Source of the DNA: Paragordius varius
Lineage: Eukaryota; Animalia; Nematomorpha
Length of the DNA: 64,000 nucleotides
Reading direction: 5' to 3'
Assembly: GCA_964247055.1 (NCBI GenBank)
Contig: OZ176054.1
Span: 8,308,001-8,372,000, forward strand
Part shown: positions 22,238 through 57,693 of the stretch, piece after piece
Position numbering within the stretch: the stretch's first letter is position 1
Layout of the letters: each line of letters begins with the position of its first letter
Program-made: the position numbers and the translations under genes
Notes under the pieces: model-generated
What the model saw: the letters and a program-made list of their open reading frames with translations, nothing else
Told to the model about the DNA's origin: nothing
Database searches by the model: none

Positions 22238-22652
22238 ATGTTGGAAGATCTAATAAAAATTATAAACGGTTTAAATTTAAATATTGACAATCTGGCAAAA
22301 ATTGTAAACGAATTAAAGTCTAGAAAAAAGGATAATTATGAAAAAGTATTTTGTTTTATATATTTTAGTGGGATCCCATTGAACAAGCTAATTTTGATAT
22401 AACAATTCTCTATCTAATCAATTCTCTTTTTTATAGTATATTAATTATATATATTTAGTGCATCTAAACATAAATGGTGATAACATAAATGAATCTGGAA
22501 TTAAATCGGAAATAGATCGAATTAAATTATGCCTTCAAGAGGTTAGAAGAACTCAGAAAAGCCTTGGCTTAATTAAACCTACTAAAGCAATTGATACTCG
22601 TGTGGCAAAATCATTAATTAAAAACGCTCTATTTGATATAAATAAAAATTGA
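22238..22652 (+). CDS. C1D: Nuclear nucleic acid-binding protein C1D (Rrp47, exosome cofactor), 122 aa, two 23-nt introns
   Basis: Exons 22238-22345, 22369-22435 and 22459-22652 give ...WDPIEQANFDITILYLINSLFYMHLNINGD...IKSEIDRIK...IDTRVAKSLIKNALF, matching the C1D pattern LDPLEQAK...LNSMFW...VKQELERI...LDRGAASRFVKNAL. Confidence 0.85.
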
Positions 22653-23727
22653 TTATTAAATATGTTTGTTTTTTTATTATAAATCGGTGATAATTTTCGG
22701 ATGGCCCTGTTTACTACTAACACCTTTTTTTGAAATATTATCATAGAACAACTCGGCATAAACAGACCACATAAACTTTTTAACCTGCCATAGTTTTTTA
22801 AAAACGTACCTCTATTTTGTGGTCGCTTTACATTAGTTGACTAAATGTGATGTTGCCAAAAAGTATCCCTTTAGATGTGAGATGATACAAAAAAATAAAT
22901 TTTTTCTATTTCAGTTGATAAATAAAATTTTTCATAACTGATTTTAATTGATTTGGCTTTGTGCATATTGTTTTTAATATATTTATATATGTTTGGATTT
23001 ATTTGACATATTTTTATAATAATTTACTTTATTATTTGAATTGCTTATAAATAAAAAATCTTTTTTTCCCATATTCGTAAGACAGTCAGTCGACTGAAAT
23101 AAATAGCTTATATGCATTAATATTTTTTAAGTTTGCTTTATAAAATATCACAACTTTATCATGACTAATACCTTATTATATTATGTTAGTAAATTCAATG
23201 AGCGATTTTTGAAGTAAATAAAGGTTTTTAGTGGTAATATATTTATATAATATGTATGAAAAAGCTATTGGGAATATAATAATTTATCCCAATTTTCTAA
23301 GTACCTTTTTAGTTTTGAATTTGTGGAAGCTAGTTACAGATTGTGTGAGTCGGACACACTTGAATCTATATACCCTTTATTTTTTTCTGCTGCTCGGGTT
23401 TAAACGGGACTAAAACATCTTTCAATTTTATATTGCATTCTCAAACTTTAGGATCCTAAAAATACCCATTTAATCTTATTGAAACACCTGGTAACCTATT
23501 CTAAATTGTATAAAAGTGAAATTTTAAAAATTAACCCAGTTAGGGTCAAACATCCAAACGGTTGTAAGTGTATCTACTAATTATAGTTTCAAAATAAAAC
23601 AATAACCGCTATTATGATGACTATTGGAAGAAAAATTTCATCCAAAACCCATATTAACTCTTTTTTATGATATTGAAAGAAAAATTATTCGGTTTTTAAT
23701 TAATATAAAATTTTTTCTTCCATATCA

Positions 23728-23838
23728 AAAAAGGGCGGAGCTATTGTTGGGGAATTCATTAATGATTATATTTGTTCTACATTTGGATTTGAATGGGTCT
23801 ACCGGTTTTCCGAAAACAGATCACAAAGCCACAACTTT

Positions 23839-23875
<37 letters not shown>
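23728..23875 (-). mobile_element. Helitron 5'-terminal fragment (same family as 33210 and 56166) with an expanded (TA)n
   Basis: Reverse complement reads TC(TA)n...GGCTTTGTGATCTG...GGAAAACCGGTAGACCCATTCAAATCC, matching the other copies. Confidence 0.75.
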
Positions 23876-26249
23876 TTTCCATATTATCGAATTTATTGAT
23901 ATTAACATGTGTGTATTTGAATAAATATAAATAATATTAATAATAATATATATATAAGATTTTATATGTATATGATTGTACAAGCCGGTCTTATCTATGG
24001 TGTATAGGTTGCGACGTTTGTATTTTTTTAAAAAAATGTTCTATTGGCTTTCTAAAAGAGGATTGGAGGGGGCGCCAATTCCCCGGAAGCTGCAAATCCT
24101 TGGTCCCTGGACTATTATTTTATAAAGAAACCCATCTTTTATATTTTTCTATGCATCAAAGGAATAATTTATTATCAAAAACACCATATTTTATAAATAT
24201 CATCGTTTTGGGGTGAATAAACAGAGTAGAAAAGTAAATTGGTAACACACTTAATATTATAATTCCCAATTCTTATCATCATATATTTTAATTTTACAAA
24301 TATATTCACGGTATCTCAGGTGCGTTCTGCTTTATATTTTAGAATATCAAGAAGCTGTTTAGAAATCAAATTGGCACTGATTAACATATTGATATACATG
24401 GAAAAATTATAGTTTTTAAAGAGGATGATTTAAGAATCAGATATTCGAAATAATTTACTTATATGAATCCTTTTGTTCAACTCAATTTGTCAATTAAGCA
24501 CGATCATTTTACTATATGTTAAAAAATAACTAAGAGTCCTACCAACAATTATTCACAAATTTCAAATAATTATCAAAATAAGGCGAATGAATGATTTATA
24601 AAGAATTTTGTTGATTAAACACACACATGTTTTATACCATTGATGGTTTTATGTGATTGTTGTGGTAATTGGTTATTATTTTTTGCATATTATAATTGAG
24701 GAATAAAATGGGCAAGAGCTCAATCATTCCTGACACACAATATCGCAATAATCCGGAATTTGTGTATTATAATTAACTTGATTATGATTCTGATGGTGAT
24801 TTTAGATTTGAGCCTAGAAGTGTAGTATGTTTTTTGTGTTTTTATTGTAATACTTGAATTCAAAATAGCCATGAGATTAGGTCAACCTTTCCGCACAAAG
24901 GACCTTTTCAAGAAAAAGTTGCATTTCGTTTACCTCTGTTCTAATTTTATTAATTTAAAATATTTGTATCAGTGGGCTCTAACCTCGGCCCATTAGCCGC
25001 ATGCCCTTTTAAAAGTGCTCTTTTTGGCCCTTAATAATTCATTTAATTTTCGGATGTTTTATTTAAAATATAAACATCTGCAGATGTGTCTAAAGCTCTG
25101 CATATTTGTCCGTACGTTAAGCACCCTTCAAGCAATTTCATGTTTGTTAATGGCTAAAACTGCCTATATTATATACAATATTTATGTTCCATTAAAATTC
25201 TTTCTAAATTTTTTGTTCTATTCTTACCTTCTCATAAGGACCGCAAACTGCATTAAAACACACGGTTTATCCGCCACTTAACAAATAAATTCGCAATAGA
25301 TATCACAAATTACTTTAAAATCTACCATTTCATCCTAATAATCGGTCTAAGTTTATTACTATAAATAATGTGATTGTCGATATAGAAATTTAAAACATCA
25401 GGTGGAATAACTATTATTATTTTGAACACATATTAAATCCAAGTATTTTAATTAATTTAAAATATTTCTAAAATTTTAATTTTTTATCCGATTTCACTTA
25501 TTTCTTCATATAAAGAAATGAAACAAATACCTGATTTATTTGAAAAAACTTTCATTTATATTTATTTTTCAATTTTAAGATGTTTTAAAACAATATATTT
25601 GCTTCCGGACTCATTTGAAACCGTTTTGAATTGGCATTTTACAAACATATATAAATATACCCTAATTCTTTAATGAATTTCAATTTAACCATTTTTTAAA
25701 TGTTTTTAATTAAGCGACTAACCAGGATAAAATATCAGATAAAAGTGGGCAAATTTTTGATTGAAATACGCTGCCAATATATCTGGTACCCTAAAATGTG
25801 TTTTTCGGTAGAAATTAAAACAAATTACTCTCATTTTTTTAAAAAAAAGAGCTAGTGATCTTTATCTCAACGAAAAAAGCCGATATATGAAATTAAATTA
25901 TATAGCATATTTTGCATTTAAAATATATAAGCAATGTCAAGCATTCCTGAAACGGTACTAAAACATTTAAACACTCTTTATAAGATCCGCTAAACCATAT
26001 CTATCATAATTTCGATAATATTGTTCGAAACTATATATCTATATAAAATGTTGTGTGTTTGATATTTTAACTGATATGTGGAATTCCATATAATAAATTG
26101 CAAAATTTATTTGATTTAGAAACAAACGAAACGTAAGCGTGTTAAATTTTAGAAGTTCTAAAATTGGGCTCATTCAGTAGGGTTTATGCAAACCGAAAAG
26201 ATAAAAACAAATGATGAAGAATTAATGGGAATCAAACAAAAGTTTTAAC

Positions 26250-27050
26250 TGTAAAAAAGAAAGGCAATAGCAACTTTTAAAAAATAATAAATTTTGTATT
26301 TTATGATTTATTTGATATTGCGTTTTCAAATTCACAAACAAGGTATACTGTCACAATATTCTCTAAATATAATAATCTTCACGAATTCTTTTGACCGTTT
26401 TTGCAAGAATATCAGTTTCTTTTAATAGAGATTGTTGCTATTATAGGTAGCCATTTTGTTTCCATTCCTAATTAAACATCAGTTCAAGAGCTGTAGTTGA
26501 CAAGTGGGTATTGATACTGATTAAATCTTTTCATTTTTAATGCTATGATCTGGGTAAGATCTTTAATCAAATTAAGTTTTCGCTTGGATGATTGATGATA
26601 ACGGTTGGTTAAATAAGCTCGTTATGTTCTTTCATGATATTCTAAACTTCGATATTGTTTGTTTCTGATTTCCAAACATTAACTTGCGTATAAGGGTTAA
26701 AATTATTTGAAAATTTCAATTTTTGGGTTTATTTAAGAATGAGAATCTGATTGTGATGAAAGTCTAATCTCTACAGCAATTTGGAGTTTTTGGCATGAAC
26801 TAAAAATTTTTGGTTTTGTGCGAAATTTTCTAATATGAAATACATTTTGACAGTAATATATTTTGGTCATCATAGAGGCAACAGAATAAATATATCACTT
26901 TTGTGATAATTTAATACATCTTTTTTAGTAGAGAAGCCCATTTATTATTATTTTGTTATTGTTAGATTGGTTTTGAACACATTGGTTTAGGATTGATATC
27001 TGTTTACAAATATAGATATTTATAGAGAGCTTTGTTTGGTTTGTTGTGCA
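26250..27050 (-). pseudogene. Possible highly decayed LINE remnant
   Basis: Faint EN/RT-like phrases (KIIINGLL; PDHSIKNEKI...LLN.CLI) broken by many stops. Confidence 0.2.
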
Positions 27051-30079: not shown

Positions 30080-33000
30080 TTATTTTTTTCTTCCTCCACG
30101 TTCTTTCAAACTTAACTCAATGATGCTACCATTGACCAAATTATAGTAGGCAAGGGTATTGGAATCTTTGATAAAAGCACCCTAATTCGATAAATTAATA
30201 TATGCATAATTAAATAAATTTAGAATATCATGTTTAATTGAAATTCAATTTTTACTTGATATTGAAGTTTCTGTTTACCAGCAGGTAAGTTAATGCTTTC
30301 ATATATTTTTGCCTTTATTACAGATATCTATGATATAAAAATTATACAGTATACAGTTAAGAGAAATTTTTAATTCTATCATTATTGTACATTATATAAA
30401 TAATACAGCAAATATTACATTATCGCTCAAGGGCATAACCACATTCAAGACTTGTCCATGCATTTTTAATTCAGGCTTATCAGGGATATCTGGTACATGA
30501 ATTTCTATTTGAACTGGTCCCTAATATTAGGCATATGATAGTGAATTTAAATAAGTATAAAGAATGGCATTAAAGTAAATAGTCGTTTTATTATTAAATG
30601 GTTCTTTTTTGCTAATAGAGAAATAAATAGTAAATATATACACTGCTAGTTTTTCATAAATTTTTGCCAGATAGGATATAAAAGAGCAATTTAATTGGCT
30701 TAAAGTTATTTTTTTCTCTTCCTGCTATCGACCAATAATAATGCTTTTTGCTGTATATTCTATCTGGCAATAACTAAAAACTAAAATATATTTGTTCATA
30801 TTGTATCTATTAACCAATAAAAAATTACTATCCACATTGTATTATGAATCAAACTGTTAAGAAAACATACTCTATGTTACTTACTGGATTTTGGGCCAAA
30901 AACTCCGCTTCAGGTATAAGCGCCATCTCATTCAACGTAACGAGTCTGGGCTTTTTGGGTGCCGGAGGTACAACAGATCCCGTTATAACGGGTTGAGCCG
31001 AAATCGTACCAGCTGACAGGAGCGGTCCGCCCATCATATGGGGAGGTGGAACAACCACGTGATGTGGATTATAAAAGTTTGCTCCTCCATGCATTATTCC
31101 CATATCTCCAGTCGTTGCTCCAGGCGGGCCATTCATAAACATCATATTTTGGGTTGGGGGTGGGGGCATATTTATTGGGGCGGTTGGCGGGCGCTTCAAA
31201 GCTTGAGCAGAAGCGGATGGTGGTGGAGGTGGGAAGGCTGATATCGTGGTCGTTACAATTTTCGAGGGCCCGACTGCCGTTTTAGAGGCAGTGGAGGAGC
31301 TAATAACATATTTACGATAAAAGATGAATAGGCGAACACAGTACTTCGAACCGGTACCACATGGAACTAAGCCAACGAAGTTCCGGTTTTACTTCTGCAA
31401 AAAGCGCCCGGCTTCACAAAATTTTAAAAACTACCCTGGTTTCAATAGTCCAGGAACCGCCCCGGTTTTTTTCCGACACGGTTAAAAGACGAGAGATAAA
31501 ACATTTAATAAATGTGTTCGTTGAAGGGTTTTCGGGATTACTATACACCAACTTCGTGAACAATCAAGTTTAAAAAACGTTTCATCCTTGTTAAAATTAT
31601 GATAGCGCTGCACAAAATAATTTATAGAAAGGTGTGATGGTATAATGGGTAGTGGGCTGCAATACCTGTACTAAGGGGTACTAGTGTTGAAACACCGAAA
31701 CTACGCAACTTTTCCATTATCCCTGTCAGCCCTGAACAAGCGAGTGTTAAGCTTAGCCTTGATACAATTAAAGTCGTTCTTTGATAAAAGGGAAAAAATA
31801 GAAACTCTAATCTGCATATTCAAAAAATAAATTATAAAAAAAGATGCCTTTAAACATGTTAATTATTAAAAAAATGTATAAAAAGTTGTTTTTTGTGTGA
31901 AAATAGTTTACAAAGGTCTCAAAACGGCCATTTAAATGCTAAAAAGTGTATGCTTTTGAAATACCAAATAATACTTTGTTAAAAATTCAGATTTATCGTG
32001 CAGCTATAAAATATATACATTTGATAAAAATGATTTTTTCCTATTATCAGTTTTAGGGTCAAAAAATATATTATTACCAAAAATGTACATGGCCCCTAAA
32101 AAATAGTTTGCACAAAAAGCGGTTGACTGTCTATTTTAATATCTTATCCTTATTATCTTTATTTATTTATTTAACCCTCAGAATTAACGCATTTTACGGA
32201 AATATTTTCGTTGTTAATAATCAATTTTGGCGCAGTTATGTATAAGTAGTCAAAAGTTCTATTATCTACAAAAGTGGTAAGAAAAAAGTCATTTAAGAAA
32301 ATTCCCTGCTGCACAAAAAAAGTTTAACCGTCTATTTATGAATTTTATATGTATGTAGGTAAAACTATAATATACATGAAAGAAGCCCAAATTTCTTTCT
32401 CACAAAAGATAAGTAGAGATGGTCTTTTTCTATATTAATAATGACATACATACCTCTCAGGGTTATTTGTCGCAATTTGCGTCGGTATTTTCGTTGTAGT
32501 CATAGCCGGTGTCATATTTGATCCTCCTGCGCCACTCTTATTTGTGTTGGTAAGACCAGCTAAACCGCCATAACTGGGAACGGGTTCCTTAATCAGTGTT
32601 ATTGAACCGCTATCAAACACATTATTTTTGGAAGTGCCACCAGTACCAGCATTGTTTGCTGTAATCTGAGTATCTCCCATATCTTCACCATCAGCCAACT
32701 AGCACAAGTCAAAATTTAAACAACATCTTTAAAAAAAACTTTTTTCGAATATTTTGTTTGACTAATGACATTTAAACACATTGTTTCATTCGAAAAGGCT
32801 TTGATGAGTTTTTTGTTGCACAAATAGAGAAACTATTCGAAATTTTGATTTTACAATTTATCGTTTTATATGGACGTTAATAAAACCGCTAATTAAAACA
32901 TTTTGTTTAAAATGAAAATAATTATTAATATGTGCTTTCATCACGTGCTGCGTACCTTTTTGCCAATGTAAGTTTCCTTGTGTCCAGCACCAAAAATATC

Positions 33001-36000
33001 TGTACGTCGTTCAGCCAATTTCTTAAGCGAAGAGCCAATCGACATACCAGTAGCATAAACTTCTTCTTGTTCTTTCTTTTCTTTGAGCAACTTTTCACGC
33101 TGTTCGATCCATTGTGGATCCAAAAGTCCTAAATATAGCAGCAATTACATTATAATATATATTTATTTATATTTTTGCAATTTCAAATACATATATATAA
33201 ATATAAATATCTATATATTTATAAAAATGGAAAATGCTGGCTTTGTGATCTGGTACAGGAAAACCGGTAGACCCAATCAAATCCAAATATCGAAAAAATA
33301 TAATCATTAATAAATGTCCCGACAATAGCTTCGCCCTTTTTTTGAAATAGGCCCCCAGTTCGGGCCCACCCCGTATGAAAAACGGTTTTTTTTTGAAAAC
33401 AAAGTCCACAAAATCGTGTTTTTGAGACAATTTTCCGGAGAACGTGTTGGACCATTCAATTTCAAATATGATTTTTGTTTACTTATTTTCGATTGCGCCG
33501 AACATAGTCGAGTCACTTTTTTGATTTAGGCCCTCTTTTTACCCGCTCCCCCCGTAAAATGCCATTTTTTTCAAAAAACAAAGTCCACAAAAATAATTTT
33601 CTAAATCGATTTTTCGCCCTAGGTATGAGACCGTAAAAATTCAATAAAGATTCCACGTATTCCCTGTTAAAAGGCAAAAATTTTAGTCCACCGTTTATTT
33701 GATGATAGCTGCTGGGTAAGGAGCTACCCGCTAAAAACTGATTTTTCATATAACTTTGTGAACTGTTTCCGGAAAACCGGTGATCCCAATCAAATCCAAA
33801 TATCGAAAAAATATAATCATTAATGAATGCCCCGACAATAGCTTCGCCCTTTTTTGGAATTAGGTCCCCAGTTCGGGCCCACCCCGTGTGAAAAATGGGT
33901 TAAGTCAATTTTCCGGAGAACGTGTTGGACCATTCAATTTCAAATATAAATTTTGTTTACTTATTTTTGATCGCGCTGAACATGGTCAAGTCACTTTTTT
34001 GATTTAGGCCCTCTTTTTACCCGCTACCCCCGTAAAATGCCATTTTTTTCAAAAAAAAAACAAAGTCCACAAAAATATTTTTTTGATTGTATTTTTTTGT
34101 CCACGGTATGAGACTGTAAAAATTCGAGAAAGATTTTTCGTATTGCCTGTTAAAAGGCAAAAATTTTAGTCAAGCGTTTCTTTGATGATAGATGCTGAGT
34201 AAGGAGTATCTATCATATGCATAGCATGTTAAAAGATATATGGATATTAATACATTATTTATCCTCATCTATATATTTATAAAAATGGAAAATGCTGGCT
34301 TTGTGATCTGGTACAGGAAAACCGGTAGACCCAATCAAATCCAAATATCGAAAAAATATAATCATTAATAAATGTCCCGACAATAGCTTCGCCCTTTTTT
34401 TGAAATAGGCCCCCAGTTCGGGCCCACCCCGTATGAAAAACGGTTTTTTTTTGAAAACAAAGTCCACAAAATCGTGTTTTTGAGACAATTTTCCGGAGAA
34501 CGTGTTGGACCATTCAATTTCAAATATGATTTTTGTTTACTTATTTTCGATTGCGCCGAACATAGTCGAGTCACTTTTTTGATTTAGGCCCTCTTTTTAC
34601 CCGCTCCCCCCGTAAAATGCCATTTTTTTCAAAAAACAAAGTCCACAAAAATAATTTTCTAAATCGATTTTTCGCCCTAGGTATGAGACCGTAAAAATTC
34701 AATAAAGATTCCACGTATTCCCTGTTAAAAGGCAAAAATTTTAGTCCACCGTTTATTTGATGATAGCTGCTGGGTAAGGAGCTACCCGCTAAAAACTGAT
34801 TTTTCATATAACTTTGTGAACTGTTTCCGGAAAACCGGTGATCCCAATCAAATCCAAATATCGAAAAAATATAATCATTAATGAATGCCCCGACAATAGC
34901 TTCGCCCTTTTTTGGAATTAGGTCCCCAGTTCGGGCCCACCCCGTGTGAAAAATGGGTTAAGTCAATTTTTTGGAGAACGTGTTGGACCATTCAATTTCA
35001 AATATAAATTTTGTTTACTTATTTTTGATCGCGCTGAACATGGTCAAGTCACTTTTTTGATTTAGGCCCTCTTTTTACCCGCTACCCCCGTAAAATGCCA
35101 TTTTTTTCAAAAAAAAACAAAGTCCACAAAAATATTTTTTTGATTGTATTTTTTTGTCCACGGTATGAGACTGTAAAAATTCGAGAAAGATTTTTCGTAT
35201 TGCCTGTTAAAAGGCAAAAATTTTAGTCAAGCGTTTCTTTGATGATAGATGCTGAGTAAGGAGTATCTATCATATGCATAGCATGTTAAAAGATATATGG
35301 ATATTAAAACATTATTTATGGTAATCTATATATTTATAAAAATGGAAAATGCTGGCTTTGTGATCTACAGGAAAAACGGTAGACCCATTCAAATCCAAAC
35401 TTCGAACCCCCCCCCCCCCCCCCCAGAAGTCCGAAGGACTTCCTCGGGCTGCGTAGCAGCACGAGATTCACGCTAGTATATATATATATATATGGCTTAA
35501 TCCTCGATGTCTTGACATGCCTTTTTAAAATGAATAAAGCTATAAATTAATACGTTTATGAAGATTGGGATAAACTTTTCAGCGTGAATTAAAAGTTACC
35601 CATATTCCTATGATCTATGGATATTATTGATATATCATACGAATTATATGTAGTCTCCACTTTTCAATAATTTTGTAAAAATAGTACCTTATATTATAAA
35701 CATGAAAATAATTTTCATAAAAATCCATGATGCGAAGATAATGAGCCATATATTTTCGATGATCTAGGATTTACTGTATAAAAATAGTAGTAGGAAATCA
35801 AAATACCTATTCTCATATGCTCCTGCATTTTGTGAGCCGGTATCTTTTCCCCAGTAATAGGTGATATCAAATATTCTACCGTGTTGCTTTGAACTTCCTT
35901 GGCTCGATGTGCTAAATATGTAAAACAATAAAATGCATTTTGTATAAAAAAATATGAAAAAAATTTATTTGTAATGTGAAATATTTTGCATTAAATAAAA

Positions 36001-39000
36001 AAAAATTTATTCCTAATATAAATAAATGCATTAAATTGGGCTGTTACGAATAATGAATGGACCATTCAAAAATTTTGATAGATATAAAAAAACTTATATA
36101 AAACTCAAACCCAACTTAAAAATTTAAAATTTAACAAACTTTTATCCAACTTTGTTGTTATTACTATAGTATATAAAATATTTAAACAATTTTCTTTTCT
36201 TCAAATAAATTATACGGCAAAAATATTTCCATTTATAGTATCAATTTAAATGAGACTGCCTTATGAGCGTTAAATCGGTTAGGTTATTTTCTAAAACAGT
36301 CAAAAAAAACTTAAATCCATAATTTTTTAGAAATCTTAAATTAATATTTATAAAAATAAATACCTTTTGGATCATAATTTTTACGGATTATGACATCATC
36401 TGGACTTTTGGTAATTGGGGCAATGGGTTCATTAAAATCTGGTTCAGGGGTCGGTAATGTCTATAATTTGGTTAAAATTTGTTATTATCGAATGCTGGTT
36501 ATTTTATAATTTGATATTTTTTGTTCCATATATATAAATTTTAAATATACTAAAATGCATCTAATTCATAAATCAAAATTTTGTTATAGTTGAAGTTATT
36601 AAATTTTATGAGACAACTACTTATTATACACTAAACAGACAAACGGACACAAACATTTGTTTTTATGAAAAAAAACAACGATATTTTTTAAACCCTACTC
36701 CTACATTAACTATATAAATTTTGGAATATATAAATATATGTGTGTTCCAATATTTACATCTCTTTCGCTTTCATTGTAACCCAAAACGATAGGTTATATT
36801 CAACATTATCATATAGAAATATTTTATCTTTTTTTAAAAAAATTTGTCTAGATTTTGTATGTGTAATCTCAACTAATTATATATATAAACCTGATTAATT
36901 TGTGGGGATTCGCCAGGCTTTTCTGTTCCCATTTCCTCATCAATTATTTGCTAAAATATTGACACGAATGTAATTTTAAAAATATATTTGCTTTTTAAAT
37001 TTTTTATAAATATGACAATCAATAATAACAATTATTATTAATGGTGAATACCTGTGCAATATCAATAGCTTCTGTTTGGGTTGTGGAAATATTTTTTTCC
37101 TCCATACGTGCGAAAATCGACTTCTGTAAAGAATTAAATTTTATTAGATCGATTTTTGAAAATATATGATACATATATTTGTAGACAGCTAACTATACTT
37201 CAATTTATTTACTTAATTGTTTTCGTAATACCTAATAAACGATGATCAAAAATATGCAATTATTAGATATAAAATCGGATCATGATATTAATTTAATAAA
37301 GAATCAATTATACTTTAGACTTTTTACCAATGTTATTATTTTTTAAAACTAAATACTTAATAAAACATCTTACCATAAATTAATATGTACATGTTTTAAA
37401 TTAAACAAAAATATGGATTATATTACAAATATGAAACATTAAAAATTATTTATAAAATTACAATTTTGAAGTAATTGATAAAAATCGAATTTATAAAATA
37501 TATATAAAAATGATTTTTATCCTATTAACCAATTTAGAAAGTTTAGAAAAAAGTGTTTCGAGTATTTTTAACTACAATATACAAGCACTGGAATTTAAGT
37601 AAATTGAGAATATGACGTTGATTAGATGTGTTGATACTCCAAGTTGTTTTGGAGCATTTCGTAATTTATTGTGTTGGATGGAATCAAATGCTTTGGAAAA
37701 ATCGACAAAGCACATATGCAGTATTGTTGAATTCGATGTGTTTCTTTAGTATCCACCTCATATTACATATCATACCTCGGCATCCTCTACCTTTTCGAAA
37801 ACCAGCCTGAATCGTGGATATCTCGGGGTCAAGAATGGTATTTAGTCGAAACTGTATTATTTTTAGGAAAACTTTGGACACCTGGTTTATGAGCGCTATG
37901 GTGCGATAGTTGTCGCACAGTTCTGAGTTACCCTTTTTTAAAATAGAAATCATAATGGATGTGCACCAATCCTCAGGAACATCTCAAATATGGTTTGAAA
38001 TGATTTGGTACATATATTGATTGGGATATATTTTATTATTTCAGTAGGTGTGTCTCTGTGGCCCTCTGATGCCAGTAATAGAGTGTTTAATCGCAAGTTC
38101 TACTTCTTCTTTCATAATAGGTGGTTCTTTAGTATCAACACATCTAATCAACGTCATATTCTCAATTTACTTAAATTCCACGGCTGTAATATCTACACCT
38201 CACGGTATATCTGACTCATGTAAGGTATAAGTCGGCCTATGCCAAGGATGCGTTTTATCCCCAATTCTTTTTAACGCATACCTCGAATGCATAATAAGAA
38301 ACATCCCAGAAACTTATGGCATTAATGTAGGTGGAAACCTAGTTACATCCGTTTACTACGGGGATGATACAGTTTTATTCGCAGACAGTGTAGACACATT
38401 ATCGCAAGCCTTGCAAGTGTTTACAACTGAATGCAATAAATTTGGATTAAATATCAATTTTAATAAAAACAAAAGTTATGCAAATCAACCCGGCTCAAAC
38501 TAATCCAATAATCCTCAACGGCAATCAGATTGAAACAGTAGACAGTTAAACGTACTTAGGTAGCATTATTAACAGTGAGAACAACTCTACGCCAGAAATA
38601 AAGCGAAGAATTGCTATCGCTAAAGCAGTCACATTCAAATATAACAAGATTTGGACGTCGCATGACATTAAACTAAAAACCATATTCAGATTAATCAAAG
38701 CTGGACACTGAAAAAATATGACGAACGTCAAATAAATTCTTTCGAATTATGGGTTTGGAGGAAACTTCTCCAAATTAAATGGACAGACAAAATTTCAAAC
38801 ACCACTATTTTAAATAAAATTAACCCAGAAATGTTACTTCTAGGCAGCTTAATACGGCAAAAACTCTCCTTTTTCGGGCACATTATGAGAGCCAACTCAC
38901 TTGAAAAATCACTGATCCTGGGAAAAGTGAGTGGTGCTCGTAAAAGAGGGAGAAGACGAACTGATGGATAACATCCTCAAAGAAACCAATCAATCATTAT

Positions 39001-42000
39001 CCGAACTAAACACCAGATCCGGTAATCGCAGTGAATGGAAAAGTAATATTTTCAATGTTGCAGTTAGTCGGAATCGACCTAATCAACAAGAACAATAACA
39101 TACAAGCAGAAAACAAAACATAACAATCCAACTTTAATTATAGTTAAAAAATGGTGTTGAATAAAATAGTTTGCACAGAAATGGTAAGAAAAAGAGTCAC
39201 TAAACAACAAGGTCCGCCCAAAAAAAGTTTTTAATATACATATATTAACTAGACCTTTTCACTTTGTAAAGTTGTGGTTTTTTGCACACTTTGTTGCTGT
39301 TTTTGTGCCAATGCACTTTCCCGTTCCCGTTCTCTAATGGCAGCGAGATTAAGCGTATTCGTAGCCATCATATGTGTCGCAGTAGCAGAGGTGGCATCTT
39401 TCGTATCCGTTATTCCTGGTTCAGTCCCTAACCCAGTGGTAAGACCGGATTTAACCATCGTTGCTCCTAATCGATCTACTCAAATAAAAAAAATATATGT
39501 AAAGATAAAATATATATTTCATGAAAATGGAATCAATATATATAAGAATTTGCATGGGCGAAAAGGGAAGGATATATAAAGAAAAACATTTTCTAATAAT
39601 TTAATTAAAGAATCAAAAATATGCATAGATTATTGTATATGCCGGGTTTGAAACGATCACAGAGTTGCAATCGGTTAAACAAACTCATCTTTACTAAAAT
39701 GGGCCATAAAAGCTAAAATTACAAAAAAAATATGTGGCGAAACCGTATTTACAACAACTTATATAACAAAATCATTGTTATTTAAATGAAAATCCCATAT
39801 ACCATATATCAGGGGTGGCCAACGAGGTGACCGCGGTCACTTTCGTGACCGCGACAACTCAAAAGTGACCGCCTGAAAATATTTTTTTTTATAAAATTTT
39901 ATTGATTTTTTTCGGATAGTTGGCTACTTCTGAGCGAATTTAAATTTAAAATACAAAAAAATACGGTTTAAATTAAAAAAAACGTCTAAGAAAAGGGTGT
40001 AAAAAAATTATTTTATTAATTATAATTCATATGTTTTGGAGCATTTGCATTAAAACTTAAAATCAGTCATTTCCCTTGAATATATCAAAACTTTGAGCAA
40101 AGCTTATTCATAAATCAGAAGCATAATCGTGAAGTTAGATTTGATTTGATACACCAAAATTAGGTTTTTAAAACTTATATTTTAGAATGAGCCAAAAAAA
40201 GTTGTACAGATACAAAAAGATTGGGAGCATGAATACTTTTTTATTATGATAAATGAAACATGCACCTGTCTAATATGCAATAGTACTGTTGCTTTGCCCA
40301 AAAAGTCAAATATTGAAAGACATTATAGATCTCTGCATCCACATTACTCCAAAAACTACCCCTTACAAACTCAAGAACGCAACATTAAAGTAAAGGAATT
40401 AAAAGAACAATTATCCGCCTCACAAAAAAGCATACTTAAATACAACAAAGACTATAAAAATGCTACGATTGCTTCATTCAAGATAGCGGAAATACTCATT
40501 CGGAACAATAAGCCATTCCAAGATGGTGAAATATTTAAAGAAGCCTTTATTAGCGCTTGTGATATTTTATTTGAAAATTTTGATAACAAAAATAATATTA
40601 TGACAGCTATTAAAAGCATAAGCTTATCGAGAAATACCGTTATGCGCAGGGCTGAAGATATTAGTAATAATCTTGATGAAATTTTACAGGAAAATATTAA
40701 TAACTGTATTTTTTTTCCTTGCAACTCGATGAGTCCACCGATTATGTTGGAATCGCCCAATTATGCATTTTTATTCGTATGATATTTAGTGATTTATCTG
40801 CAAAGGAGGAATTATTAACTATAATACCTCTCCACGAACGAACCAGAGGGCAGGATATTTTTGATTCTTTTTATAAATTTATCACAGATACGAAACTTCC
40901 CATCGTAAAACTCGCATCTATAACTACTGATGGAGCTCCAGCTATGATTGGCGTTAACAACGGCTTTATCGCTTTATGTAAAAATCACAGTGCATTTCCC
41001 AAGTTCATTGATTACCATTGTATAATCCATAATCAAGTTTTATGTTCAAAAGTTTTAAAATACCATCATGTAATGAACCCCTGTTTTAAAATTGTTAACG
41101 CCATTCGAACAAAAAGCCGCCGCCAATTTCGAATTTTGTTAAATGAGTGCGGCGTGGAATATGGAGAACTTTTATTACATACTGATGTAAGGTGGTTGAG
41201 TCGTGCCGCATTTTTAATTAGATTTAGGCACCTTTTACCACAAATAAAATTTTTTTTAGAGAATTCTAAATTTTCATACCCTGAATTGAAAGATCAAGAT
41301 TGGCTGCTTGATCTTGCATTTTTATGCGATATCACGGAAAAATTGCATAAATTAAACATCCAATTACAAGGAAAAGATAAAACAATAATGGATATGATGG
41401 GTGCTTTAAAATCTTTTAAGGAAACACTAACAGTAGTAGAAACACAATTAAAAAACCGAGATTTAAAACATTTTTTTAATCTGGCAGTGGCTGAAAAAAT
41501 AGAGAATCTCTCTTTTGAAAAATATGCAGATGATATTGGTCTGCTTATTAATGATTTTGAAAAACGATTTTCATCTATAAATAAACTTGAAGACATCGCT
41601 ATTTTTTTATCATGCCCATTTAATAATAATAATAATAATGTTGAATATATTGCTCAAAAACTCAGCCACTTTCTTGGTGTACCAAATTTAGCAGAGTTGG
41701 AAGAGGAATTAATAAATGTTAAATGCGATATCCATCTAAAATCATTAGGATCAGATATATATAAATTTATAAATAAAGATAAATACCCCCATATTTGGAA
41801 AACCGCTGCATTATTCAATTCTTTTTTTGGATCCACATATTTATGTGAATCGGCTTTTTCAATTATGAATGCTATCAAAACTAAACAGAGGTCACAATTA
41901 ACTAATAAACATTTAGAATCATGTTTGAGAATTGCTTTGACTTCATTTGAACCTAATTTAGATAAACTGAATTTTTTCGCAGTCGGGCGTTTTAAATATT

Positions 42001-44627
42001 TTTTTCTTTATTAAATATGGATGTTTATCGAGTTGTATTTTCGCTTAGGAAAAAGCCGATTTACTAAAAAATATGTGGATAGAATTAAAACTGATACAAT
42101 TTTAATGTACTCTTATTTATGTTCAAATTATGGTTCTAAATTGGAATGCTATTTTTTATTTCTTTTATTTTTTGTATCATAATGTATTCTCCCCTGTAAT
42201 TTCAAATGCATTGTTTAAATTTTTATATTGTAAAATTTCATATAATAGAAATTTAATAAATAAATATTTTGAAGTGTTTTATGTTGGTTAAAAAATTAAG
42301 GTAGTTAATAACCCGTTGTCTTTTAATTAAAATTATTTTTGTATTTGGTTGATAGATAAAAAAAATTACAATTTTAAAATGGTTTAAACAAGTCACTCTA
42401 ATCTGTAAAGCAGGTATATACATCATTTAAAGTGTTGATTGAGTTTTTTTGATAAATATTTCTGGGTGACCGCGAACTCTTTTTTTAACAAAAAAGCCAA
42501 AAAAAAGCTCGCGACAAAAAAAGTGTGGCCACCCCTGCCATATATGTAAATGAAAATTTTTTAAATACGCACTCTTTTGTTCCTCCTCTTCGGCTCTTTG
42601 CCTTGATATGGCTTGAAGGCCGACCTCTTCAGGCGTAGTTGGCGCTGGGAAGTTTCCAACTTCATGAATCGAAAAATCGACCGTTTCCACAACCACAAAA
42701 TCATGCCAATCAATTGATGCATACGCCACTGTTTACATAAAAATATATTTATATATATGTATTAATCATTATTTAAATAAGATAAAAATCTTAATAGATT
42801 ATATCGCAATTTTAAATATTTGTACATTTAACCGATTCTATTCATAATAGAAAAATTATAAAAGTAGAAAATGAATTATGATATGACACATTGAGCCGTT
42901 TTTTTTCTAACTCAAAAAAAAATAGAATCTGTCACCCTTAATCATTTATATCCTAAAAACAAATAATGTATTTTTGGGCTAAATTAATTAAATATTTGTT
43001 TTTGAAATTTTCGCATAAAATACCAAAAACAAATATTTTATATTATGAGACTTAGTCTAGGAACACACGCAAACATCTCAATTTTGGGTTAACTTTGTCC
43101 GGAAACTCATTTTTATAACGTGAGAATAAAAAAACTCAAAGTTATGTTCAAGGGTAAGATTGAAGTGTTTATGGTATATAGCAAATTAATTATTTTTAAT
43201 ATCACTCCCTATAGAAACGAGTTTTGTCTTACATCTTTCCTTTTCAGCCAAATCATCAGCCATCTGTTTTTCCTTTTGACAATGCCGGACATGGAGGGCT
43301 CGCTTTTTGATTTCGGCCACAACACAACGTTGATCTTTTAGTTCTCGGTCAAGGCGTTCAACCATATCTTTGGGTGGTAATAGGACCTAGTTTTTAAAAT
43401 TAAGAAGATTCATTAGGATTCCAATATAAATGATGTAATAATTTTATAATATAAAAAAGCGCAAGAAAAGTTTTCCTTATATTTGTGTAAATTTTTAATA
43501 TAATAAAAAAAACCATAAATAATCACCTCTGCTTTCAATTTTATGGTGTAAAAAAGCTTAACAATTTATTATAAAAAAGTTATTTGACAGTTTTTTGAAA
43601 AAAATAAATTTATTCGCTTAAAAAATAGATTTAAAAAATAAACTTTAGTGTATTGTTCCACCAATTTGGTGAAATAGTTAAACAAACTATGCTGTGGACG
43701 TAAAAAATCAAATTGATAATTTTTTGATTCTCTGTGCATCAAACTTGTCAAAAACTGTCTTCCATTCCGGGCCACAAATTGGGCAGTTAGCTTGACAATG
43801 TCCCTAAAATCCATAAATTAACAACTAAAATTTTAATAATTTTAAAAGATAAAAAATATTTAATTTACGAATTCTGATAAAATCTCCAATTGTGTACAAA
43901 TAAAAGAAAAAATTTTGATATCGAAAGCGGTAATAAATAAATGAAGAAATCAGATAATTCAAGATGCAATTTTGTTTAAATATATTTCGTTATTGTAAAA
44001 TATAAAAGACGTTAAACCACTAATATTTCAACCGTATATACAGTTTCATATTAACTGATATTATGCATTCATCATTCAAATATCAAAAAAACCATCTTAA
44101 AAGGTAATTTTAGGCTCATTACAAATATATAATATTTACAAATCTTGGGCCGATATCGAAGGAGGTTCCGTAGAAAACTCATATTCAGGGGGCGTTTCCT
44201 TTGGCATTTCCACTTCAATGGCATCATATATAGAAGTTATTTTTCGGACTGGTATAAGTTTTTTCACAAAATCTTGATTGGAAATCGAAGGTTGTTTAGC
44301 TATGTCCAAACCTGCTAAATTAGCTTGATTCTGTTGTTCGAGTTGCTGTTGTTGTTGGGTGAATTCGTTAATTTTGAATTTATAATATGCATTATAAGGG
44401 TCAGTCAAATTTAGGAAATTAAATTTGACATTATTCTTTTCATTCTCTTTAATTCTTGATTCGAATTCAGGACCTAATCTAGTTATTAAATTATATACCA
44501 TTTCTTGCTACAAAGCTTGCAGTTTTATCAACAATATCTAAAAATTTATATAAAAAAATTAACTTCTTAACTCTGGTGGTGGATAAATGATCCCAATAGT
44601 GGGTTTGTCGATCTGAGCTTGAACCAT
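30080..44627 (-). CDS. SF3A1: Splicing factor 3A subunit 1 (Prp21), 15 exons, ~812 aa
   Basis: Exons 44627-44564, 44537-44499, 44473-44140, 43803-43644, 43386-43233, 42728-42573, 39475-39255, 36460-36364, 35911-35807, 33128-32956, 32698-32454, 31299-30885, 30520-30419, 30327-30256 and 30181-30080, all phase-consistent. Two SURP domains, YASIDWHDFVVVETVDF, LISPITGEKIP, LAERRTDIFG, and a C-terminal UBL ending LKERGGRKK. Confidence 0.96.
31631..31800 (+). mobile_element. tRNA-derived SINE, second copy (in SF3A1 intron 11)
   Basis: GGTGTGATGGTATAATGG...AACACCGAAACTACGCAA...CTGTCAGCCCTG...CGAGTGTTAA...GATACAATT...AAAAGGGAAAAAA, colinear with 17519-17693. Confidence 0.7.
33210..35476 (+). mobile_element. 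Tandem non-autonomous Helitron array in SF3A1 intron 9: units 33210-34267, 34268-35324 and a 152-bp unit 35325-35476
   Basis: Three A|TCTATATATTTATAAAAATGG 5' ends, a single 3' hairpin (35443-35465) followed by CTAG|T (35473-35476), and ~515-bp internal subrepeats. Confidence 0.88.
37588..39099 (+). mobile_element. RTE-clade LINE, 5'-truncated with a 5' inversion (37588-38130 minus; 38131-39099 plus)
   Basis: RT motifs KKGNSELCDNYRTIALIN, QAGFRKGRGCR, GLCQGCVLSPILFNAY, YGDD and the RTE C-terminus RANSLEKSLILGKVSGARKRGR. 9-bp TSD ATACAAGCA at 37579-37587 and 39100-39108; AAC-rich tail. Confidence 0.88.
39810..42537 (+). mobile_element. hAT DNA transposon, Buster/SPIN/Charlie (GTF2IRD2-like) group, in SF3A1 intron 6
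   Basis: 12-bp perfect TIR CAGGGGTGGCCA and 8-bp TSD CCATATAT (39802-39809, 42538-42545). Transposase 40187-42014 has a BED finger, LDESTD, TTDGAPAM, HCIIH, RWLSR and YLCESAFS, with two -1 frameshifts. Confidence 0.95.
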
Positions 44628-47800: not shown

Positions 47801-48120
47801 TAACGACGGAACAAAGAGCAGAGTTTGGTGTAAAATGCTTAGTGGCCTTAAATATCTTATGTGAATCATTTCCAGGCTTCTTGTCTGACGTGTATGCCAT
47901 TTACGAATCCGTGGGTAAATTGTTATACGCCCTAAGTGAAAATAATAGCTTTTGTGACAATAGTTTACTAAGCTATCCTCACCAAACGACAACATTTACC
48001 AATAAACATGGTATTTATGGTACAACTACCCTCCTCTCCTCTAAATTGGATTGGTTTGAAATGAATGAAATGTTGAATGAATCATTCAAACAATTTATCA
48101 TTATATATAATTGTCTGTGA
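44803..48120 (+). CDS. INTS2: Integrator complex subunit 2, single-exon ORF, 1105 aa
   Basis: C-terminal block LQIQILIELC...ICSYLHQRFIDDPRLIKDVHTQGYDVSIIPTLVSHVPSLHVIIDLVPEL matches the INTS2 signature; overall length fits. Confidence 0.85.
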   Translation: MSFENLISDLKKLHDSHKYKYNTLQTFPIDIILEKSNNDKFFILYEELIKIYTLKLDSSYSKIFDNSLYLSEISNILCYLCEILTTFNICSLKIFINLLIKLHYGPFYINELIKRFPNYLKPIITYLIENESEFALKKTILNIFITLIQSDYGLSHNVLEALYEEQSPFLYFALVLKYIRDSKKLSVLLTVLTNILSINTEGRCVGWIMSLLKREGQSLYAPFINSFNQCIYQSLHTYLNQKSPNEDNEESKIVICGILRLWCAWKMQLNHQWTLDEIACYHQFFISHFGNFYPSYVSLMLYNPNLLKDEFVNSNSHLFPELYKKTLQTSIIDILTSSKYHVNDEDKNFILHLSLLLNTSNVDMHELSNLVSQKIGIRVHVKPTVLTKFKAFVDINIPQNDLMRQCFDSLDVIQNLNAHTNLHELTNLSILMALFKSAANEMIVFNEEHFALLKRWLVKQIKNCSVPINSLIIHIIQGYIHQILAFVKKIGLGTKSKNFYRVKTILDDILIGANEIDQIFGNFFANASNESVTTETYTPYILFVYYVLWLEDAFIEPNSSFYMPEMAIERNLVGLIHKLPINNLLRTMLFTDQEDNYTSILPIFLGLIIKNHTYTFSVEEWMANSNSMNPNFFHNISDDNSNIAFKFGLDNIGARSISQKVTSYIKTDTITDKNFINLLAIINPILEFVDQVDFFQFCNVKLMNLLNGNKVGESINTPVSLPLLQTLQHSCLQHLNNKHTKFDSIQALTPITNVHDTKSSNIFSSTLKNENSDNLVNMYRKVAELSLDPLLSLKHSDNLMSDSKFLRSTIQASDYCLKLSAQFYTKYLLHRPDSTANTLVDYHKNPVDRSEAIYNLLYLQNLLQIQILIELCAMDCKVVTNDYGKLYLQLWKTEYRTIICSYLHQRFIDDPRLIKDVHTQGYDVSIIPTLVSHVPSLHVIIDLVPELVLQDTLVQMKLFGLYLVAYLSRYYTLPKFMDVASLCLTPLSALIKDPVNDSGLTTEQRAEFGVKCLVALNILCESFPGFLSDVYAIYESVGKLLYALSENNSFCDNSLLSYPHQTTTFTNKHGIYGTTTLLSSKLDWFEMNEMLNESFKQFIIIYNCL

Positions 48121-52850: not shown

Positions 52851-53059
52851 TTTCTCATCTCTATTTATTGAATCAATTACTAGGGTTTCAGGTGTATTTA
52901 AGCTATTATTATTAAAGGGGCACCGTTATGTTTATGTAGCATACACTTTTTTCAATGTTATGGTCAGATATTTTCGTTAAATAATATTTCATACTCATTC
53001 ACATTTTATTTGTTTTATTCTCTTCTTGGATTCGTTTCCTGCTTGCGTAACCGCTGAGT

Positions 53060-54530: not shown

Positions 54531-54763
54531 TCAAAAGCCAGAAAAATTTTTACTTACAAGAAATTTATATACTTAATATTTTACGGATTAAATAAATTGC
54601 ATTACATATATTGACATATAATTTAATTCCGTTAAAATCTGTATTGGAAAATTTGACTAGTTACAATTATTTTTTAAATCATTATGATTCCCCCCTATCA
54701 TAAGATCAATTCAATATAAGCAACGAAAATCAATGTGTGTTATTGTTATTTTTATACATATAA

Positions 54764-56166
54764 CTAGCGTAAATCTCGGGCTGCGTAGCAGCCCGAGGAA
54801 GTCCTTTGAAGTTCTTGGGGGGAGGAGCAAATTTTTTTGCCTTTATACGTGATCTGCACATCTATTAAATTTATTATGACGAAAAATAGTCTCAAAAACA
54901 TATTGTTGAGCGAGTTTAATAGTATAAAGGCCCCACGGACACCAAATTTAACAATGTTAACAAAAAAATTATTTATTTAGCAATGATCTTGTTATTAACA
55001 TAAACAATTATTGGGGGAATTGTGCAAAAAAACTTTTTTTTTACATCAGGCATATAAATAATAAAAAGGACATGTATAATTTTGTCCATATGGAATAAAG
55101 AGGTATGGCACATAATATTTTCATAACGCATATTTAGTGGCAATTTAACAGCAAAATGAGCCGTCCTACCGCCCTGTAATAAGTTAGCAGCTATCCCAAA
55201 AGAACCTATAGCCAAAGCTATATTTTTTACCTCTGACAGTTGCCAATATAAGCTTCAAAAATGTTTTACTGGTCCCCCTGGTGTATCAAAAAATATATCC
55301 CACCAACATTATTAAAGATATCCCTCATAAGACGGGGCAGTTTTGTGGGTATTTCCTTACCCAGGAGCCAATATAAAAAAACGCACGACTAAAATTTTTG
55401 CCTTTCCTGGAATCATGATTGATTCCATATGCTCTCATTAGTTTTTGGAAAAATTGCCTCAAAACTAAAAAAGCATTCTATGGTGGCGCAATATGTAGGG
55501 CGTGAAGGGCCTAATAACCCCTAATTTTAAAAAACCGCACGATCTAAATTTTTGCCTTGTTCGGGTAATATTTTAAGCAGCTATTTAACTCATATGGCCT
55601 GAGAGGTTTTTTGAAATTTCGCCCCAAAGGCACACTATTACGATATGACGGGCCAGTTTTTGCGGGTATCTCCTTACCCGGCAGCCAATATAAAAAAACG
55701 CACGACTAAAATTTTTGCCTTTTAACAGGAAATGCCTGGAATCCTCATTGATATTTAACGGTCTCATAGCTTTGGATGAAAAATAGATTCAAACAATTAT
55801 TTTTGTGGACAATTGTTTTGGAAAAAATGGCATTTTACGGCGGGTAAAAAGAGGGCCTAAATTAAAAAAGCGAGCCGATTATGTTCGGCGCATTCGAAAA
55901 TAAGTAAATTAATCATATATGAAATCGAATGGTTTAACACGTTTTCCGGAAAATTGTCTCAAACACACAATTTTTGTGGACTTATGTTTCAAAAAAAACC
56001 CGTTTTTTACATGGGGTGGCCCGAACTGGGGGCCTAATTTAAAAAGGGCGAAGCTATTGTCGGGGCATTCATTAATGATTATATTTTTTCGACATTTGGA
56101 TTTGATGGGTCTACCGGGTTTCCGGAAACAGATCCAAAGCCAGAACCATTTTTATAAATATATAGA
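54764..56166 (-). mobile_element. Non-autonomous Helitron (1403 bp) carrying a PIF1 helicase remnant
   Basis: 5' A|TCTATATATTTATAAAAATGG at 56166; perfect hairpin CTCGGGCTGC-TAC-GCAGCCCGAG followed by CTAG|T at 54764. 55130-55292 encodes D.PGG..KTFL and GIAANLLQGGRTAH...KLPLN. Confidence 0.92.
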
Positions 56167-56310
56167 TTGGTAATATTTAATAACTACCAAAAAAGCCTTT
56201 AATTTTTACCAATTTTTTTAATTAAAGTGCGAAAGTAAATATATTGAGTAAAATTTATTTATAATTAGGATATTATCCCAATATCACAAAAAACAACCAA
56301 AGATATAGAG

Positions 56311-56780
56311 CTAAACACTGGGTGAAGCCACTGGCATGATTGGAAGATTCAATGGGTTATGTGATAAACTTGCATGTGGTCCTAATAATATCTAAAACAT
56401 TAAATATATATCACTTGTCTTTGATTAATTATTTGAGCAATTTTCATTTGCCTGATCATAAATATGACGGATACAGGAACAATTAAAAATGTTGCTGAAC
56501 TAAATATTACCCATAGGCCTTGTCTACTGAACCAAAACAAACCCTTGCATGAAAAATACAATTTTTTAGCAGACACACCAAAAAGATTTCTTATTGGTTC
56601 CGGTAGCATTTCGGTTAGGCCAATTAATCTCTCACCTAAACTTTCATCCTCCTAAAATATACCAAAACTAACCTCCTCAGAACTTTCAATCATTAGAGGT
56701 TCGGGAGTAGGAAACGTAGGATTTGAAGTATGAGGTATAAATCCAAAATCTCCGCGATCCATAAAAAATTCATCGGCCAT
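56311..56780 (-). CDS. TOMM22: Mitochondrial import receptor TOM22, 141 aa, introns of 21 and 23 nt
   Basis: Exons 56780-56673, 56651-56415 and 56391-56311 give EDESLGERLIGLTEMLPE...FSRQGLWV...LIVPV...QRQILLGP. Confidence 0.92.
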
Positions 56781-56850
56781 CCTGTTTTTGTTTTAATTAA
56801 TATCAAGCAAGTAGTAGGTATGCGCGCGTGCTAAACAATGTGCAGCGATA
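56781..56850. promoter_or_regulatory. Putative bidirectional promoter TOM22 / myosin-I tail gene (70 bp between ATGs)
   Basis: Divergent ATGs at 56780 and 56851; GC/CpG-rich patch TGCGCGCGTG. The start of the plus-strand gene is uncertain. Confidence 0.3.
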
Positions 56851-57693
56851 ATGTACCTTTTATCCGAACATGAAGTATTTTTAGTAATAAAATTGAAGTT
56901 GTCCGCAATAGTTTTTCTTCAGAAAGCTATACGGAATTATTGGGTAAGAAAATATTTATGTGAACTAATCAAAGCCCTACCCACACAGTCTCCCATAGAC
57001 TCCCGATGGCCCATTTGTCCAAAACACCTTGAACCCTTAAATAATTTGATTAAATGCATTTATCATAAATGGAGAGTTTGCATTATGTTTTATAATATAG
57101 TGCTATAAATATCGGAAAAAACTTAATACACAACTCCGTGCTAAATTACACGAAAAGTCAGTTGCGAGCTCATTGTTTAAAAATAAAAAAAGCAGCTATT
57201 TTTTGAGGTTTTTACCAATCATATTTAAAGTATAGGACATGAATTCATAGGAGATTATATTAAACTTAGATTGAATCCGAAATGGCAAAAAATAATTGAT
57301 GAAAATTTGGAACATTATATTGTTTTTGCAGATTTAATTTTCAAAATAAATAAAAAAGATGGGCATGTAATTAAATTTTAATTTTAGGCAATACAAAAAC
57401 TTTTAGTACTTACTACTAAAGGTTTGTTTATATTGGAACCAAAGACGTTAGATTTAAGTTATTCGTTTCTCAGTTCAGAAATATATCAAATCAATTTATC
57501 ACCATATTATGATGGACTTATTGCATTTAATATGAAAGTATTATAAATTGATACAAATTAGATGGATACTTTCAAACATGCAAAAGATTATATATTATAC
57601 AGCTCTCATGCCATTGAATTATCCACTAAAATATATTTACTTTCATTAAATTATAATGAACTTCCTATCATTGTTAACGTGAATGCAAGGTAA
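56851..57693 (+). CDS. Myosin-I tail protein (IQ-like + TH1 domain), ~249 aa, four tiny introns; no motor domain in the window
   Basis: Exons 56851-57075, 57101-57207, 57231-57366, 57388-57537 and 57562-57693 give SPIDSRWP, KWRCYKYR, EKSVASSLFKNKK, IGHEFIGDY, KINKKDG, DGLIAF and SHAIELSTKIY, colinear with the Myo1A/B-type TH1 domain. Confidence 0.85.

Follow-up and report, generated by a model that had tools for sequence, protein, structure and literature searches.

Very Short Introns in Known Systems and in the Hairworm Locus

In a survey of 51 animal genomes published in 2026, introns shorter than 30 nt were found only in Myxobolidae and in Dicyema japonicum (PMC13644364). The median intron length is 27 nt in the myxobolid Henneguya salminicola and 22 nt in both Thelohanellus kitauei and Myxobolus rasmusseni (Hadjez et al., 2026; PMC13644364), and long-read cDNA has confirmed introns of 22–27 nt in animals other than the present one (PMC13644364). 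D. japonicum has a mean intron length of 38 nt in a genome of 67.5 Mb of which 49% is repeats (Lu et al., 2019; PMC6736024). Ciliates have introns of similar size, with ~25 nt in Paramecium and 15–16 nt in Stentor (PMC5014332, PMC9505925). The present analysis concerns a stretch of 64,000 nt from the hairworm Paragordius varius (Nematomorpha; assembly GCA_964247055.1, contig OZ176054.1, positions 8,308,001 to 8,372,000 of the forward strand), hereafter referred to as the window. Ten segments of 21–26 nt, each beginning with GT and ending with AG, interrupt four genes of the window, namely those for C1D, SF3A1, TOM22 and the tail of an IQ + TH1 myosin-I. Judged from the DNA, these segments are very probably true spliceosomal GT-AG introns of the U2 type, taken out of the pre-mRNAs of four housekeeping genes that are functional.

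A first-pass annotation of the window had listed Paramecium, nucleomorphs, microsporidia and dicyemids as the known hosts of introns this short and had described their genomes as typically compact. This holds in part only, as the list is out of date, Myxobolidae having been added in 2026 (PMC13644364), and as some myxobolid genomes, like that of D. japonicum with its 49% repeats (PMC6736024), are not compact.

The myxobolids resemble the window in having animal GT-AG introns of 20–27 nt which occupy conserved positions between conserved exons, with short introns clustered within genes, and the GTa donors and weak upstream A residues described for both myxobolids and Dicyema (PMC13644364) have possible counterparts among its ten mini-introns. 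The window differs from the myxobolids in its clear 3′ T-run and in that introns of 0.25–6 kb occur in the same gene as tiny ones. Furthermore, its lineage is apparently bilaterian and its introns are known from DNA, whereas the myxobolids are cnidarians with cDNA support. The GC content of the window (~29%) is at the level of that of H. salminicola (29.1%), a species with no mitochondrial genome (PMC13644364). D. japonicum, a parasite, is a bilaterian, as the source of the window appears to be, and in both a repeat-rich genome holds very short introns; the GC content of D. japonicum, 36.7%, compares with ~29% in the window (Lu et al., 2019; PMC6736024).

Ciliate introns fall into the same length class as those of the window and are likewise AT-rich, and those with a length divisible by three (3n) carry in-frame stops, so that retention is never silent (3/3 here). 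However, ciliates have tiny introns only, in compact somatic genomes and often with variant genetic codes, in contrast to the standard code, metazoan genes and additional long introns of the window. In Caenorhabditis elegans the 3′ splice site reads UUUUCAG and there is no branch-point consensus. There, as in the window, the AG directly follows a U-run and a branch-point motif is not evident, which is consistent with direct recognition by U2AF. The two differ in sequence (UUUUCAG against UUUUAG) and in size, the shortest introns that are common in C. elegans being roughly twice as long as those of the window, and the Nematoida link between them is a presumed one.

The published genome of the hairworm Gordionus has 26.9% GC, 64% repeats (mostly DNA transposons) and five chromosomes represented by chromosome-scale scaffolds, and hAT elements figure prominently among the transposons of hairworms. 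The GC content of ~29% and the hAT element of the window fit this description. A further hallmark of Nematomorpha is the presence of perfect coding palindromes in mitochondrial genes (PMC6649704). No mention of introns was found in the published accounts of hairworm genomes covered here, a coverage outside which lies Cunha et al. (2023), where intron sizes may be treated. Although introns of this class have been described before, no earlier report appears to exist of them in this lineage, where they lie beside kb-sized introns within one gene.

Structure and Coding Frame of the Ten Mini-Introns

All ten segments were found at the positions and with the lengths given by the first-pass annotation, and the weak donor hexamers that it quoted (GTATTT, GTTAAT, GTTTGC, GTTTTT, and GTGATA) match the sequence. 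The lengths are 23 and 23 nt in C1D, 26 and 25 nt in SF3A1, 21 and 23 nt in TOM22, and 25, 23, 21, and 24 nt in the myosin tail (mean 23.4 nt). Individual segments contain 76–92% AT and the means by gene are 80–89%, compared with 64–74% for the exons, which makes the earlier description of mostly ~90% AT slightly generous.

Excision of the ten segments leaves the ORFs of C1D, TOM22, and the myosin tail intact and the SF3A1 N-terminus open through exon 3. The earlier claim that each segment either shifts the frame or holds an in-frame stop was borne out, as the retention of any single one brings a stop codon 2–19 codons on (10/10). This includes the 3n segments TOM22_1, MYO_3, and MYO_4 (the first of TOM22 and the third and fourth of the myosin tail), all three of which contain an in-frame stop, although the sample is small. 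The spliced ORFs have no in-frame TAA or TAG, from which it follows that the standard genetic code applies.

At eight of the ten sites, no other GT..AG pair within 20 nt in either direction preserves the ORF. When each of the 256 possible pairs of dinucleotides was allowed to shift by up to 8 nt to the left or right, GT..AG alone solved all ten frame breaks, against an estimated chance of roughly 1 in 5 per site that some GT..AG solution exists. This argues against the segments being small insertions in decaying pseudogenes, or errors of long-read assembly, in which GT and AG would be coincidental. Such an origin might be thought of in an AT-rich and repeat-rich genome, where short removable segments that join two frames are common by chance, but it is considered highly improbable here.

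In the same 256-pair test, TA..TA solved nine of the ten breaks. With this amount of sliding, TA..TA boundaries can thus be drawn at 9/10 sites, as might be expected if the segments were removed from the DNA itself in the manner of the internal eliminated sequences (IES) of ciliates. However, TA is ~3 times commoner here than GT or AG, so that a score of 9/10 is the chance expectation. The genes are also those of an animal and use the standard genetic code, and elimination from DNA is scarcely credible as an explanation.

The C1D Gene

The C1D gene (22238..22653, plus strand) has three exons with 122 codons followed by TGA, the ATG being at 22238. Its first mini-intron, C1D_1 (22346..22368, plus strand), is 23 nt long, lies in phase 0 and reads GTATTT..TTTTAG; when it is kept, a stop is reached after 19 codons. 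The second (22436..22458, plus strand) is also 23 nt long, lies in phase 1 and reads GTATAT..ATTTAG. A 64-residue peptide spanning the junctions gave one continuous match to the Pfam family Sas10/Utp3/C1D (E=1e-6), whereas the three exon peptides gave no match when searched separately against Pfam. The C1D family is therefore recognized only once the exons are joined.

SF3A1 and the Origin of Its Introns

The SF3A1 gene (30083..44627, minus strand) was assembled by tblastn with orthologs and refinement of the junctions, and was found to possess at least 13 exons encoding SURP1, SURP2, a PRP21-like region and a ubiquitin-like end. Two mini-introns on the minus strand lie close to its start, namely SF3A1_1 (44538..44563; 26 nt), which follows codon 21 in phase 1 (PPPELR^N), and SF3A1_2 (44474..44498; 25 nt), which follows codon 34, also in phase 1 (FVARN^G). 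After splicing, the N-terminal sequence is IGIIYPPPELRNIVDKTASFVARNGPEFESRI, which can be aligned with 13 orthologs from a representative search with no gap (PPPE[VL]RNIVDKTASFVARNGPEFE), while tblastn on the unspliced DNA needs a 17-residue insert with stops at the same place. In a representative protein search with exon 3, none of the whole-exon alignments exceeded 54% identity.

Intron positions were compared with those of two annotated orthologs of SF3A1 at their genomic loci, from the mite Halotydeus destructor and the beetle Holotrichia oblita, whose exon structures were rebuilt exactly. The comparison covered SF3A1_1 and SF3A1_2 among the ten mini-introns. The mite gene has a single intron, of 53 nt, at PPPELR^N in phase 1, and the beetle gene has an intron of 128 nt at PPPEVR^N, again in phase 1; both agree with SF3A1_1 in position and phase. 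On the strength of this agreement SF3A1_1 is taken to be an ancestral bilaterian intron that shrank, an outcome which the first-pass annotation had raised when it proposed a comparison with orthologous positions. An ancestral position and phase also speak against a chance insertion in a pseudogene.

Five more SF3A1 introns of the window, all on the minus strand, match the beetle gene in both position and phase. These are introns 3 (43804..44139; 336 nt, phase 2, GTAAAT..TTTTAG), 4 (43387..43643; 257 nt, phase 0), and 5 (42729..43232; 504 nt, phase 1, donor GTAAGA), and two nearer the 3′ end of the gene, of 364 nt (30521..30884; phase 0, donor GTAAGT) and 74 nt (30182..30255; phase 0). Their agreement validates the gene model. 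SF3A1_2 and an intron of 91 nt (30328..30418, minus strand; phase 0) have no counterpart in the SF3A1 genes of the mite or the beetle.

Further introns of the gene are one of ~6.1 kb (36440..42572 with approximate ends, minus strand), one of 2678 nt (33129..35806, minus strand; GTATTT..ATTTAG) and one of about 455 nt. The ~6.1-kb intron contains, in antisense orientation, a transposon of the hAT family (40246-42014, plus strand) with two overlapping ORFs encoding a Spin-doc/ZBED zinc finger and a hAT dimerisation domain. Other introns of ancestral origin in SF3A1 became longer, reaching hundreds or thousands of bases, in part because transposons inserted into them. Longer introns have donors closer to the canonical sequence (GTAAGT, GTAAGA, GTAAAT, and GTAAAA), albeit in a small sample.

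These results agree with much of what had been said of intron sizes in the first-pass annotation. Longer introns with GTAAGT and GTAAGA donors are present in SF3A1 (364 and 504 nt, respectively), and the reported coexistence of 25-nt and >3-kb introns in that gene was recovered as 25 nt beside ~6.1 kb and 2678 nt. The next shortest introns had been given as 58, 64, 74, and 91 nt, of which the latter two were found and those of 58 and 64 nt were not located. In all, ~21 introns were mapped in the window, ten of them tiny and none between 26 and 74 nt, which upholds the proposed bimodal distribution, with tiny, ordinary and kb-sized introns in one gene.

Two further observations concern the 5′ end of the gene. 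SF3A1 and INTS2 are arranged head-to-head (44627/44803), with start codons 175 nt apart and hence a very short shared upstream region. In addition, when the 5′ region of SF3A1 (44139-44627) is cut into 31-mers, 17–27% of them occur as exact matches in runs labeled as four other organisms (X11–X14, 2024–2025), which indicates that close relatives with public reads exist.

TOM22 and the Myosin Tail

The TOM22 gene (56311..56780, minus strand) has three exons with 141 codons and a stop. Its first mini-intron, TOM22_1 (56652..56672, minus strand), is 21 nt long and lies in phase 0, as does the second (56392..56414, minus strand; 23 nt). Exon 2 aligns with residues 41–118 of the 142 residues of human TOM22, its end falling precisely at QRQ, and a further 26 codons come from exon 3.

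The IQ + TH1 myosin-I tail gene (56851..57693, plus strand) has five exons with 249 codons. Its mini-introns, all on the plus strand, are MYO_1 (57076..57100; 25 nt, phase 0), MYO_2 (57208..57230; 23 nt, phase 2), which has an unusual AAG acceptor, MYO_3 (57367..57387; 21 nt), and MYO_4 (57538..57561; 24 nt). Exons 3 and 4 match positions 8–51 and 57–108 of the Pfam Myosin_TH1 profile, respectively, and the exons on either side of MYO_3 are on this account contiguous. Searches against PDB with C1D exon 3, TOM22 exon 3, and myosin exons 3–5 returned nothing meaningful.

The myosin-I-like gene starts with an ATG just before the IQ motif, and its ORF stops at approximately position 150 of the 185 positions of the TH1 profile; the gene may have one more exon, since the stop codon is overlapped by a GTAAAG donor. 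A search of every frame of the 64 kb gave no myosin motor motif (P-loop, switch I/II, SH1). TOM22 and the myosin tail also lie head-to-head (56780/56851), their start codons being 70 nt apart with a very short shared upstream region.

Presence in Genomic DNA and Variation

Four read runs (X1, X3, X4, and X5) were compared with the window and all were identified as DNA, with even depth across intergenic sequence. Contigs of three samples from two studies cross the six mini-introns of TOM22 and the myosin tail with no gaps and with the segments unchanged, and no form with a segment left out is among the events listed for 56341-57700 in the DNA contigs. This evidence covers the six segments of these two genes. 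As contigs of three samples keep them intact, the six are neither assembly insertions nor excised from DNA. The possibility of an assembly artifact, named by the first-pass annotation as one that would refute its claim, is thereby answered for these six by short-read contigs, and their retention at full depth contradicts removal at the DNA level.

Polymorphisms in TOM22 and the myosin tail comprise four synonymous changes, one Ile>Val replacement and one A>T change at 57221, inside MYO_2. The preponderance of synonymous changes among the exonic variants suggests that both genes are under purifying selection and accords with functional genes translated in their spliced frames, which is not the pattern of decaying pseudogenes.

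Splice Signals and Proposed Recognition

The position following the GT donor (+3) is A in five of the mini-introns, T in four and G in one (n=10). At the 3′ end, T occupies position -3 in 9/10 and positions -4 and -5 in 8/10, giving TTTAG. An A is found at -7 in six and at -9 in six. With ten introns in AT-rich sequence, these preferences at both ends are suggestive only. No U12-type motif (donor /[AG]TATCCTT, branch site TCCTTAAC) was present in the ten donors or interiors.

A tiny intron of this kind may be recognized as one unit. The 5′ signal would be minimal, consisting of GU followed by A or U, and a U-run immediately before the AG (UUUAG) would form the 3′ signal, the short U-run and AG possibly being read by U2AF. 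Adenosines 7–11 nt upstream of the 3′ end are candidate branch points, and the step in AT content from exons to introns may aid recognition. Since every mini-intron that is kept gives a premature stop, unspliced mRNAs would be non-productive and could be open to nonsense-mediated decay. We infer removal by the spliceosome, and the signals that it would use, from the sequences and frames, from homology across junctions, from the intron position shared with arthropods and from the presence of six of the ten segments in DNA. If the introns are spliced, a spliceosome adapted to substrates of ~21 nt, as suggested by the first-pass annotation, follows logically.

A number of observations weigh against this interpretation. 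In a blind scan for GT..AG segments of 18–32 nt that join open frames of at least 30 codons, 160 cases were found, compared with 150–252 for control dinucleotide pairs. GT..AG is thus not enriched, which makes the restoration of a frame weak evidence where homology is lacking. For MYO_1, MYO_2, MYO_4, TOM22_1, and C1D_1, where the flanking residues are poorly conserved, frame restoration is the single line of evidence, and for TOM22_1 and C1D_1 other frame-preserving junctions exist. The splice signals are very weak, the sample is only ten and MYO_2 ends in AAG. Of the words sampled from the window, a fraction of 0.00 was present in RNA-labeled runs under the same species label. Likewise, protein collections contained no product of this organism, by exact look-ups with INTS2 and the GPCR ORFs or by word searches with the TOM22 exon ORF and INTS2. 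A scan of metagenome contigs for a junction pattern also gave no match.

Some of these features would be accommodated if the introns were real but inefficiently or alternatively spliced, with a sizeable share of transcripts keeping them, to be broken down or translated into truncated proteins, and some exact junctions differing from those given here. The minimal 5′ signals fit such a situation, as do the alternative frame-preserving options. At TOM22_1 a tandem TAG|GAG acceptor of the NAGNAG type (56649-56672) allows an excision of 21 or 24 nt, with a difference of one Glu in an acidic run, and three longer options preserve the frame there; at C1D_1 there is one alternative GT..AG pair, of 35 nt. 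A premature stop in or through every intron is also the pattern expected where frequent mis-splicing is policed by decay, and the short introns of microsporidia, with a splicing efficiency of ~25%, offer an analog (cited in PMC13644364). However, SF3A1 and TOM22 are single-copy core genes whose protein must be functional, eight of the ten junctions are unique and the polymorphisms are mostly synonymous. Splicing of this inefficient kind is accordingly regarded as unlikely, and productive removal of the ten segments as U2-type introns is preferred.

Implications of Mini-Introns beside kb-Sized Introns

It is, in our estimation, an evenly balanced question whether Nematomorpha are to be added to the two animal lineages with such introns as a third, independent one. 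Their introns of 21–26 nt would form a discrete class and would coexist within genes with kb-sized introns full of transposons, the genome measuring a few hundred Mb. If this is true, intron miniaturization would be uncoupled from genome compaction, and introns shorter than 30 nt would have had a third independent origin, in an apparent ecdysozoan related to nematodes. An intron of 53–128 nt in arthropods that measures 26 nt here, while its neighbors have expanded, argues against simple genome streamlining. With introns of 25 nt and 6 kb in the same gene and handled by the same spliceosome, the locus would represent a sharper natural experiment, in which the minimal signals of intron definition become testable.

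There are also consequences for annotation. The default minimum intron length is 21 nt in STAR and ~39 nt in AUGUSTUS, and common aligners and gene predictors take gaps as short as these for indels or refuse them. The BUSCO score of the Gordionus genome (71.6%) has been ascribed to poor representation in databases. Since the tools mishandle tiny introns, hairworm annotations and completeness scores such as this one may understate gene content.

Other Features of the Window

A SIRT4 ortholog (202-2911, minus strand) is 41–44% identical to Sirt4 of arthropods and molluscs and runs off the start of the window. Its exon of 245 codons ends after GTSLS and the next exon (VYSFYLLILQ) lies at 202-231, separated by an intron of ~1.95 kb in which a GC-rich repeat is found near 1980-2060. 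A candidate for an eleventh mini-intron, of 21 nt at the 3′ end of the SIRT4 ORF (2160-2180, minus strand), was rejected, as orthologs place the next exon at 202-231. In a maximum-likelihood tree of SIRT4, the branch of the window sequence measured 5.3 substitutions/site with biased composition, and the lineage was not placed. Such an extremely long and compositionally biased branch indicates a fast-evolving lineage.

Several genes are uninterrupted. INTS2 (44803-48120, plus strand) is a single ORF of 1105 codons (3.3 kb), an LRR protein (13033-14682, minus strand) is likewise encoded by a single ORF, and two GPCR-like ORFs (61444-62631 and 62923-63996, minus strand) are also without interruption. 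Intron-rich and intronless genes therefore lie side by side in the window. INTS2, SIRT4, and SF3A1 are animal genes, in keeping with the animal genome assumed by the first-pass annotation. A search of the whole 64 kb against Rfam gave no family that reached its gathering score.

The description of the region as rich in transposable elements also stands, given the ORFs of hAT type and a repeat depth thousands of times that of single-copy sequence. Very high-copy repeats occupy 55421-56156, 57997-58180, and 59285-59652, where the summed contig word depth is 10^5–10^6, compared with ~700 in single-copy flanks (run X1). This depth, together with many internal joints, suggests thousands of copies of short elements.

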